Source: Perkinsus chesapeaki ATCC PRA-425 (Eukaryota > Protista > Perkinsozoa). Taken from it: a stretch of DNA of 64,000 nucleotides. A program made the translations under genes and the position numbers. Positions within the stretch are counted from its first letter, which is position 1, and each line of letters opens with the position of its first letter. Below, piece by piece: positions 56,088 through 58,682 of this stretch. The DNA lies in the NCBI GenBank assembly GCA_013115145.1, contig JAAPAO010000011.1, positions 79,705 to 143,704 of the forward strand. The letters are read 5' to 3'. Under the pieces are notes generated by a model, which saw only the letters and a list, made by a program, of their open reading frames with translations, was not told where the DNA came from and did not search any database.

Positions 56088-58682
56088 ATGAGCACCCACA
56101 TGGCCGCCAGCTTATTCCTTCTATTGCTCCTAGTGGAAGGCTTTGACGCAAACCGAGCGTTGCTAACGAAAATAACCGAGAATGAAGTGGAGGACTCTTT
56201 GGCACTAAACACACTGAAGGCTGTTGGCTGGGCGGCGCTATCGGCTATATCCCTCCCAATAGGCTCCACCATAGCGATATTCCTCCCACCCAGTCAGCGG
56301 GTATCGAGCATGCTACTTGCCTTTGGATCAGGGTCGCTGCTGGAGGCCCTCAGCATAGAGCTGTTTGGCCATGTTATCCATGCTACTGATGATAAAAGAG
56401 TGATATACTCCCTCATCGCTGGGGCCCTCATCGGTTGCCTTATCTTTGTAATGCTTAATAAAGTAATATCAGTGTACTGTAGGCGTTTCAAGCATGCTTC
56501 GACCTTAGATGCTAAATGATAGAGGGGGCTTCTATCGTCATGCCAATATGGTCAGCCAGTACGTCATGCGTGTTAAGATGAAGCTGATGGAGAGTCTGTT
56601 GAGAAGGCTAAAGCAAGTCCCAATGCTCAGTGGTCTGAGGGACATTGAACTCTATGAGCTGGCTAAGGTAGTAGCTACACCCGGGACGGTAGTACCGATA
56701 CTCCCCCGCAGTCGCTCGAGAGCACCCGATACCGCGCTGGGGAGCTAGTAGTCTGTGATGTCTCCACGAGTGCTTCGGCCCAGTCACCCTTGTTCTTTGT
56801 CGTCAGTGGGGAAGTATTGGTAACAACTCGGTTCAACGATGGAGTCGAGAGTAAGTCCGTGGAAGTGGACCAACGGGTAGTCCTCCTCTAGGTACCTGTG
56901 TGGCGGGCCCTAACGCTATATTCGGGCAGATGACTCTATGCACTGGCGTTCCTGTGGTCACTACAGCCCTAACACAGACCCCTGTTAAGCTGCTCCGTCT
57001 GCCAGCTGCCGACGTGAGGCATCATTGGTAGCATTCGGCTATCCAATGCCTGGCATGACAGGTTCAGCGCCTCCTACTTGAGAAGGAGAGTGTCAGAGAG
57101 TTCATTTCCAACTGTGCAGTGTCTAGATTGGCTCAACCGGGTACTGTGTTTGCTGATTGCTCAGAGGACACTATGGTAATAGTATGATGTTATTGTTGCG
57201 TCTAAGGGGATTTTAGGCGAGGCTGGTATCAGCTATGACACAATGCCAGCTGCAAATAGGAGATGTCTTGTTTTTTGAAGTTGACAGTGCATGCCCGATA
57301 TACCTTATTATTCTCGGACAAGTAATACTAAGGGGGGTGGGGTGGGGAATATCGATGGTTTTAGATCGAAGTGTGGTATGAAGACGATCCCGATTTACTG
57401 CTCCCCCATGGGCCTGGAGGTCTCGACCTTGACCGCACTAGTGACCATGCTCCTAGTCGTTCTGTTGGTGAAAGAAGACTCTTTGCCGTTAGTGAGCTGA
57501 TAGGGACTGAGCATCTGGTGTATGGTCATTCGGTGGCAGCAGTAGCGACTGCTATGAAGCCTACTGTGGTCTTTAAGGTAGTACAAGAATACGTGACGAG
57601 TGTGAGCTTGCTGCAGTTGCAACGTAATGATCTGGATGAGCTCATGGGAAGAGATAAGGACCTAAGGCTAGCTATGAGCAGGTATTCCATAAGACGACTG
57701 GAAGGTCGTGCTGATCCTAAAAGTAGCGCGCCACGTTCATGTTGTTGGTAGTATCGTACGAGTAGGTCCAAGCCCGCGTCCGACACCACGCCGATCGTCG
57801 TCAGTTGTGTTCCCTGATCTGGTCGATATGCGATTACCTGGTCCGCCGGCAGAGGTCCCTGTTCTTAGACCATCTATGACCACAGCGTTTGATAATACAG
57901 TACCACATGACCCGCCTAGGCTGCGATCCTACACTCAAACGTTCGTCGATAACGTTATACCATTACCCGCCGAAACGAACGAGCGTCGTGGGTCTCTGAT
58001 GGGGGAGGACAGCTTCACTATATCGGAGATTGCTAGGCACATGGATCTCGTGGCTGCCGTAGCGCATCTCGACGTCCATGATCTGGTGTCCGATTGCGAT
58101 GATGAGAGTAGCACTGATGAGTCCACTAAAAATTCTGTAAAGGACTTAGACGATAAGTGTTGTGACGGAATTGAGAATGATGTTGTTAGCGTCTGCTCGG
58201 ATGGTAAATCGAGAAGGCATGCTGCAACAGTGGTATGGCTGGGCATACTAATTGATGGCATACCAGAGTCCTTAGTTATCGGAATACTGGTATCGACCAG
58301 CCCCTTGAGTAGCGTAATCACATTCGTCTTTGGTGTGTTCATGGCCAATCTACCCGAGGCAATGAGCTCATCGGCTACCATGCTCCAATACGGCGTTTCT
58401 CGTACAAGAGTGCTAGTAATGTGGTCATCTATTGTGGTCCTCACTGCTATCGGTGCAGCAATCGGTAGCATAATATTTCCGCCTGTATCGGAAGAGGAAA
58501 CTACTTTGGCACGAGAGATTATGATAGCTATGATAGAAGGGTGTGGTGGGGGTGCCATGTTAGCTATGATCGCCGAGACTGCTCTGCCTGAGGCGAGCCA
58601 TGGCAGTAGTGTAACCGGTTTGGTTGGTACCAGTGCTGTTGCTGGTTTCCTCAGTACTCTACTCGTCAAATCACTAGCCTAA
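56088..58682 (+). CDS. ZIP/ZupT-family metal transporter with two cNMP-binding-like domains inserted in the TM3-TM4 loop, multi-exon
   Basis: The N-terminal half reads AALSAISLPIG..LLAFGSGSLLEALSIELF. The C-terminal half reads GILIDGIPES, FMANLPEAMSS and GGGAMLAMIAETALPEA. Between them, spliced exons give LKQVPMLSGL..YRAGELV..LFFVVSGEV..AIFGQMTL and QIGDVLF..IYLIILGQIEV..LIGTEHL..ATAMKPT. Confidence 0.85.

Follow-up and report, generated by a model that had tools for sequence, protein, structure and literature searches.

A predicted ZIP-fold transporter of Perkinsus chesapeaki with tandem, non-canonical cyclic-nucleotide-binding folds between helices 3 and 4

The stretch of Perkinsus chesapeaki DNA analysed here (64,000 nucleotides of contig JAAPAO010000011.1, called the window below; positions are counted from its first letter) carries a single gene at 56088-58682 on the forward strand. 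Read from the N terminus, its 749-residue product consists of transmembrane helices 1-3 (TM1-3) of a ZIP transporter, two consecutive cyclic-nucleotide-binding domains (CNBD1 and CNBD2), a disordered linker rich in Asp and Ser, and the remaining ZIP helices, TM4-8. We read this as a single-gene ZIP-fold transporter with a putative divalent-cation substrate, in which the tandem between TM3 and TM4 would serve as an allosteric regulator not canonically bound by cAMP or cGMP, and give this reading a probability of roughly 0.55. An earlier sequence-only reading had described ZIP halves split by two such domains, placed at about 56600-57110 and 57120-57680. Our boundaries agree closely, with TM1-3 at 56217-56459, CNBD1 at 56581-57091, CNBD2 at 57104-57691, and TM4-8 at 58203-58679.

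The list of open reading frames (ORFs) for 54000-61000 splits the region over the three forward frames, the pattern expected of a eukaryotic gene with short introns. The gene model was built by hand by reading all three forward frames and testing GT-AG pairs that keep the frame open. It has nine exons (56088-56462, 56509-56667, 56712-56850, 56892-57013, 57062-57175, 57217-57321, 57365-57577, 57617-57722, and 57766-58682), comprising 749 codons and a stop, and eight GT-AG introns of 39-48 nt, all of which begin with GTA or GTG and end with AG. Comparison of the last exon with a representative protein library returned a 736-residue protein that is 100% identical across the exon. This is KAF4677618.1 of P. 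chesapeaki, deposited as ‘hypothetical protein FOL47_000573’ and named ‘Cyclic nucleotide-binding domain-containing protein’ in UniRef. The public model equals ours save for one additional 39-nt intron within exon 1 (56293-56331), a stretch that is coding in our model. Because splicing it out deletes 13 TM2 residues that all homologues conserve (family consensus LMAFGGGALL) and retained in the model of the Perkinsus olseni orthologue, the extra intron is probably a false call and an annotation error.

Comparative evidence argues strongly that 56088-58682 is one gene. The public model was built independently and matches ours apart from the intron just described. The P. olseni orthologue (770 residues, 77% identical) contains eight introns that match ours in codon position and phase, seven of them exactly and the eighth displaced by at most two residues beside an alignment gap, despite saturation of synonymous sites between the two species (proportion of synonymous differences, pS, 0.72-0.85). 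Intron 7 (57578-57616, 39 nt) is stop-free and has a length divisible by three, as does its 51-nt counterpart in P. olseni, so that its retention would leave the frame unbroken and insert 13 (P. chesapeaki) or 17 (P. olseni) unrelated residues into CNBD2. We considered intron 7 as coding sequence and rejected this, as the spacing in all homologues fits its removal and the P. olseni intron translates into an unrelated peptide. Complete ORFs derived from transcriptomes (MMETSP, EukProt) keep the same part order, and the bacterial relatives are single uninterrupted ORFs.

Both insert domains are, by sequence profile and predicted structure, cyclic-nucleotide-binding (CNB) folds, far beyond chance. 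For CNBD1 (residues 150-275, exons 2-5), the Pfam model cNMP_binding matches the public protein at 61 bits against a cut-off of 27.5 (E 1.1e-16), and the domain aligns with the CNBD of MloK1 at E 3e-8. When single exons were scanned with Pfam, exon 4 matched cNMP_binding and no other exon of the two domains gave a match. CNBD2 (residues 280-434, exons 5-8) was missed by Pfam when this protein was scanned alone. A family profile of CNBD2 matches PKG, PKA, and MloK1 at E values from 1.6e-34 to 1e-11, with PKG the best at 1.6e-34, and TIGR03896 matches the domain at E 1e-4. An AlphaFold2 (AF2) model of the whole public protein, made with a 58-sequence alignment, has a mean confidence score (pLDDT) of 75. 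Both domains mostly reach 83-97 with a few low blocks in loops (CNBD1 mostly 83-95, with one block at 62). About 290 columns of the tandem align in Foldseek to the CNB-A/CNB-B tandems of PKA regulatory subunits (PKA-R) and PKG at E 1e-11. Modelled alone, CNBD2 gives a pLDDT of 87 and more than 500 Foldseek matches at E <= 0.001; all 50 matches listed are CNB or CRP/FNR-type domains, and TM-scores against the CNBDs of CRP, HCN, and PKA are 0.62-0.68. Within CNBD2, positions 57380-57466 encode a variable, disordered loop. Pfam, profiles against the Protein Data Bank (PDB), and AF2 with Foldseek therefore all recover a folded domain pair of the type that the sequence-only reading had placed in the cytosolic TM3-TM4 loop.

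Both Perkinsus domains lack, as judged by alignment, the Glu and Arg with which the phosphate-binding cassette contacts its ligand. In CNBD1 the cassette equivalent is FGQMTLCTGVPVVTTA (56921-56968); in the residue alignment to MloK1, FGE has become FGQ, and the Arg of P-R-S-A has become Val. The equivalent in CNBD2 is LIGTEHLVYGHSVAAV (57497-57544); aligned by profile with the cassettes of PKG, it has Thr where PKG has the Glu and Val in place of the Arg. These are the two cassettes quoted earlier as lacking the key residues. We surveyed the same positions in an alignment of 116 family members, 36 eukaryote-like and 80 bacterial, with 232 CNBDs. The canonical Glu and Arg pair occurs in none of the 36 eukaryote-like and none of the 80 bacterial CNBD1 cassettes, and for CNBD2 in 1/36 and 0/80, respectively, which amounts to one of 232 domains. 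Bacterial members frequently have His at the Arg position (47/80 in CNBD1 and 67/80 in CNBD2). In 38/80 bacterial CNBD2 cassettes an Arg precedes this His, giving the motif G-x-R-H-S/T, a conserved non-canonical pocket. Eukaryotic CNBD1 cassettes have hydrophobic residues at the Arg position, with an acidic residue at the Glu position in 30 of the 36 eukaryote-like members. The CNBD2 cassette keeps the Arg in 8/36; many eukaryotic CNBD2 cassettes read Cys-Thr-Glu-His, with Gly in place of the Cys in Perkinsus.

Divergence between P. chesapeaki and P. olseni differs from region to region. Nonsynonymous divergence (dN) in CNBD1 is 0.048, the lowest of all regions, compared with 0.065-0.070 in the ZIP helices, 0.10 in CNBD2 without its variable loop, and 0.29 in the linker, which nevertheless contains conserved islands. 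Neither cassette differs between the two species. At the level of sequence divergence the CNBDs are clearly under strong purifying selection and functional. The domains had been called degenerate, a term that holds for the loss of Glu and Arg and fails if it is taken to mean decay: across the alignment, the altered cassettes are a stable trait of the family.

Relatives with this architecture are widespread across bacteria and plastid-lineage protists, many marine protists among them. Among the best 150 relatives in the representative library, 58 are at least 480 residues long, and of these 55 contain Zip and 48 contain cNMP_binding. Named eukaryotic sources are the chromerids Vitrella and Chromera, the haptophyte Chrysochromulina tobinii, and P. 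olseni, with further relatives among MMETSP transcripts and metatranscriptomes. A word-index search with the full protein returned, among the matches listed, the protein itself and three relatives. A group of relatives of about 610 residues is bacterial, and when one genome was scanned for each prokaryotic species, at least 508 genomes proved to encode a relative. The suspicion that similar fusions might exist in bacteria or in relatives of dinoflagellates was thus borne out. The bacterial architecture, alignment, and tree data reported here come from the best 80 of these at least 508 matching species genomes. All 80 are colinear, single uninterrupted ORFs, and 78 cover essentially the full query length. 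Carriers include Scalindua, Verrucomicrobiales, Chromatiaceae, Methylococcales, Prosthecochloris, Terriglobia, Desulfosporosinus, and many cyanobacteria (Xenococcus sp. PCC 7305, Crocosphaera, Adonisia). A family hidden Markov model (HMM) finds two CNBD modules in 80/80 bacterial and 32/36 eukaryote-like members. A third CNBD, suggested by relatives with three Pfam stretches, was rejected since the family HMM shows two modules split by inserts.

In a FastTree phylogeny, the 36 eukaryote-like and the 80 bacterial rows fall on opposite sides of one branch with support of 97, and the Perkinsus pair lies on the eukaryotic side. The tree has no root and a biased bacterial sample, namely the 80 best matches to a bacterial query, so a donor lineage cannot be named. 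In related bacterial clusters of the ESM Atlas, all members contain cNMP_binding and only 10-20% pass the Zip threshold; most are thus annotated as soluble-sounding ‘cAMP-binding proteins’. This low pass rate may explain why the family has gone unnoticed. Among the automatic public names in the family is ‘zinc transporter ZupT/CRP-like cAMP-binding protein’.

The two transmembrane halves are recovered with different strength. TM1 (56217-56285), TM2 (56301-56366), and TM3 (56394-56459) are assigned from a weak Pfam Zip match to exon 1 alone (E 1e-3) and from packing in the AF2 model. TM4-8 are assigned from the match of exon 9 alone to Pfam Zip (E 1.1e-10) and from a family profile of TM4-8 that matches the ZIP transporter BbZIP at E 1.4e-10 with residue mapping. 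The public protein as a whole passes Pfam Zip marginally (38.5 bits against a cut-off of 35.1, E 1e-9), and the P. olseni orthologue scores 49.9 bits. A sequence search of the PDB with the whole protein found no ZIP. An exhaustive structural comparison of the whole AF2 model with 48,161 chains returned BbZIP as the top match (7z6m, Z 15.0, rmsd 3.3 Å over 196 of 238 residues, model range 40..710). In the predicted model, TM1-3 and TM4-8 therefore form one ZIP fold. The ZIP fold holds an internal inverted repeat of TM1-3 and TM6-8. Exon 1 (56088-56462) matches the C-terminal part of the Pfam Zip profile (positions 233-322) rather than its N-terminal part, which probably reflects this repeat.

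The transport site of the family departs from that of classical ZIPs. Three motifs mark TM4-8 in P. chesapeaki: DGIPES (58254-58271), ANLPEA (58344-58361), and ETALPEA (58575-58595). The ZIP metal-site motifs H-N-x-P-E-G in TM4 and (Q/H)-(D/E/N)-x-P-E-G in TM5 are not matched; the Pro-Glu pairs are kept, with His replaced by Asp, Asn by Gly, Gln by Ala, and Asp by Asn in Perkinsus. Across the 116 members, TM4 reads D-(G/A)-x-P-E, in which Pro and Glu are invariant and Asp occurs in 115. TM5 reads (S/A)-N-x-P-E in all 116, and TM7 reads (Q/E)-T-x-x-P-E and is nearly invariant. Mapped onto BbZIP, Glu181 and Glu211 of the first metal site are retained, His177 is Asp, and Gln207 is Ser or Ala. At the second site Asn178 (Gly/Ala), Asp208 (Asn), and Glu240 (Thr) are all replaced, so from the alignment this site is probably absent in the family, and the first is free of His. 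The altered, carboxylate-rich, His-free site suggests a substrate preference unlike that of classical Zn-ZIPs and may favour a harder cation, for instance Mn or Fe. The earlier description of the protein as ZupT-like is loose as a label, given these family-wide replacements and the results of NCBIfam scans, in which six family members matched no ZupT or other ZIP model and only CNBD-containing families.

The position of the insert suggests how regulation could work. In BbZIP, the moving transport domain is built from helices 1, 4, 5, and 6 and the scaffold from helices 2, 3, 7, and 8; as the metal is released, helix 4 moves its cytosolic end away from helices 3 and 7 (PMC9873690). The insertion point of the CNBD tandem falls exactly between these two parts, after scaffold helix 3 and before transport helix 4. 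As an allosteric regulator of transport, the tandem would change conformation and thereby restrain or free the cytosolic end of TM4 relative to TM3, and this restraint or release would switch transport on or off. Canonically bound cAMP or cGMP is an unlikely trigger; another small molecule or a partner protein could take that role, or there may be no trigger.

Several points weigh against this proposal. At the level of the gene, two small public RNA runs that carry the same species label, the only ones listed for it, contained none of the sampled words of the gene and yielded nothing when aligned to it, so the splicing model rests on comparative evidence. At the level of the fold, a profile of TM1-3 gave no significant match to solved ZIPs (the best match, CusA at E 0.17, is taken as chance), and the ZIP assignment of these helices depends on a predicted model of the public protein, which misses 13 residues of TM2. 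At the level of function, the coupling of the CNBDs to transport is drawn by analogy from BbZIP, and we found no binding, transport, or localisation data for any member in the literature. No neighbouring gene family recurs in more than 5 of the 80 bacterial loci, and no pathway is indicated; larger neighbour clusters proved to be spurious ORFs overlapping the gene itself. Lastly, loss of the cassette Arg and Glu lowers affinity for cyclic nucleotide monophosphates (cNMPs) and does not prove absence of binding.

A more specific form of the proposal can be held tentatively. It takes the proteins as an ancient and large ZIP subfamily, ranging from cyanobacteria and sulfur bacteria to Perkinsus, in which the tandem binds a ligand other than cAMP or cGMP, perhaps a metabolite or the metal itself, and thereby locks or frees the elevator, while the His-free Asp/Glu/Asn/Glu site would take a cation other than zinc as its substrate.

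It is also conceivable, if doubtful, that the CNBDs are ligand-free. They would then be structural or dimerisation modules, as in CNNM, or self-liganded, as in KCNH, and regulation, if any, would lie elsewhere, for example in phosphorylation of the linker. The CNB-homology domain of CNNM3 (Z 10.9) and the C-linker/CNB-homology region of ERG (Z 11.4) are among the structural matches, and the cassette residues are non-canonical across the family. The linker (57692-58202) is about 156 residues long and mostly disordered, as judged from pLDDT (below 50 at residues 432-514 and 533-576 of KAF4677618.1), composition, and dN. It ends in the Asp/Ser-rich stretch that the sequence-only reading had noticed (10 Asp and 7 Ser in 38 residues, 58089-58202). 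Within 57766-58090 (residues 445-553), it contains islands conserved in both Perkinsus species, around RRSSSVVFP, EVPVLRPSMTTAFD, PHDPPRLRSYTQTFVDNVI, and VAAVAHLDVHDLVS; some of the islands fit basic-x-x-Ser/Thr kinase-site patterns. Since some of these islands resemble kinase sites, cyclic-nucleotide signalling could, judging from the sequence, act through linker phosphorylation instead of direct binding. What speaks against empty domains is that the cassettes are conserved within groups, as with the His at the Arg position in most bacterial CNBD2 and many CNBD1 domains, and are identical in both Perkinsus species. A kept pocket fits these observations better than a plain scaffold does, although this is not decisive.

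We consider it rather improbable that the protein is a true cAMP- or cGMP-gated ZIP, with backbone amides of the cassette helix and side chains other than the missing pair still holding the nucleotide. In favour are the unmistakable CNB folds, the acidic residue at the CNBD1 Glu position in most eukaryotic members, and the occasional CNBD2 Arg among them. Both positions are lost in both Perkinsus domains, however, and the Glu and Arg pair is absent from 231 of the 232 domains surveyed. In PKA and MloK1, the phosphate is contacted mainly by the cassette Arg, without which affinity falls by orders of magnitude.

There is little to recommend the further idea that the CNBD pockets sense the transported metal as feedback, replacing the metal-binding His-rich loop that other ZIPs carry at this position. 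The insert does occupy the place of that loop, and the bacterial His residues at the Arg position of both cassettes and the Cys-Thr-Glu-His of many eukaryotic CNBD2 cassettes could be taken as metal ligands. However, the bacterial and eukaryotic groups do not share these His and Cys residues, Perkinsus has Val at both Arg positions and Gly for the Cys, and a metal-binding CNB pocket would, to our knowledge, be without precedent. That a ZIP N-terminal fragment, a CNBD protein, and a ZIP C-terminal fragment from two or three neighbouring genes were wrongly joined is scarcely credible despite the eight very short inferred introns and the lack of support in the two small RNA runs, as half a ZIP cannot fold alone, bacterial and transcript-derived eukaryotic ORFs run continuously through the same part order, and P. 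olseni shares the intron positions and phases.

The proposed regulated transporter resembles several characterised systems in part. Like BbZIP of Bordetella bronchiseptica (PDB 5TSA, 7Z6M) and the short ZupT/GufA-type ZIPs, it has the eight-helix fold, and Pro-Glu is kept on TM4, TM5, and TM7. Unlike BbZIP, it has about 465 residues, the two CNBDs and the linker, inserted between TM3 and TM4, and its metal-site residues are changed (His177 to Asp, Asn178 to Gly/Ala, Gln207 to Ala/Ser, Asp208 to Asn, and Glu240 to Thr). The two consecutive CNB folds recall CNB-A and CNB-B of PKA-R and PKG, from which the tandem differs by its lack of the cassette Glu and Arg in either domain and of a kinase-inhibitor segment, and by its location inside a loop of a membrane protein. 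The PKA-R of Trypanosoma (PDB 6FLO, 6HYQ), a CNB tandem with altered cassettes that binds nucleosides in place of cAMP, is among the best structural matches; it differs in being a soluble kinase regulator and in the substitutions themselves.

The protein can also be set beside the sperm Na/H exchanger SLC9C1, the CNNM Mg transporters, and the MloK1, SthK, HCN, and KCNH channels, membrane transport proteins for which an attached cytosolic CNB fold is an established or presumed regulator, and the whole model matches domains of SLC9C1 (Z 12.4), CNNM3, and HCN (Z 13). In those proteins the domain is C-terminal, whereas here a tandem sits within the transporter fold, between two parts that move relative to each other. 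CNB folds on transport proteins are well known, with CNG as a further example, and the CNB-homology domains of CNNM and KCNH do not bind cNMPs. With KCNH and CNNM our protein shares a CNB fold without the cassette Arg on a membrane transport protein, which we take as a functional analogy and not as shared descent.

Some features lie outside this argument. A hydrophobic, signal-peptide-like N-terminus was identified by hydropathy scan at 56088-56144 and is weakly conserved with P. olseni (51% identity). Between TM3 and CNBD1, at 56521-56541, lies a membrane-adjacent motif, GGF-x-R-K/H, whose two Gly and Arg are invariant in the bacterial alignment and which is likewise present in the consensus built from the mixed set of 58 sequences. 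Directly upstream of the gene, on the reverse strand at 54005-55833, is a divergently oriented MFS or sugar-transporter-type gene (Pfam Sugar_tr, E 1e-9). The same MFS neighbour lies upstream of the P. olseni orthologue (locus positions 3918-5730, reverse strand), making this a syntenic pair.

We found no ZIP-CNBD protein and no study of the family in the literature, including the 2007 survey of CNB domains (PMC2246266). The novelty that the sequence-only reading had left unverified thus stands as far as the literature goes and is smaller than hoped, for these proteins are already in public databases under automatic names. The architecture is widespread and uncharacterised; it is neither unique to this genome nor a new principle.

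ZIPs have been studied mainly as Zn, Fe, and Mn importers, known to be regulated by how strongly they are expressed, by trafficking, and by a His-rich loop that is unstructured. In this family, a folded module of the sensor type sits where the static and the moving half of a predicted elevator meet. The family allows one to ask how a ZIP is switched allosterically and what a CNB fold without its cAMP-binding residues senses, and intron-free members in cultured Xenococcus sp. PCC 7305, Thiomicrorhabdus heinhorstiae HH1, and Prosthecochloris ethylica offer a tractable system. If gating by a ligand other than cAMP or cGMP were true, this would be the first naturally ligand-gated ZIP. For the shellfish parasite Perkinsus, the gene represents a conserved and strongly constrained putative cation transporter.

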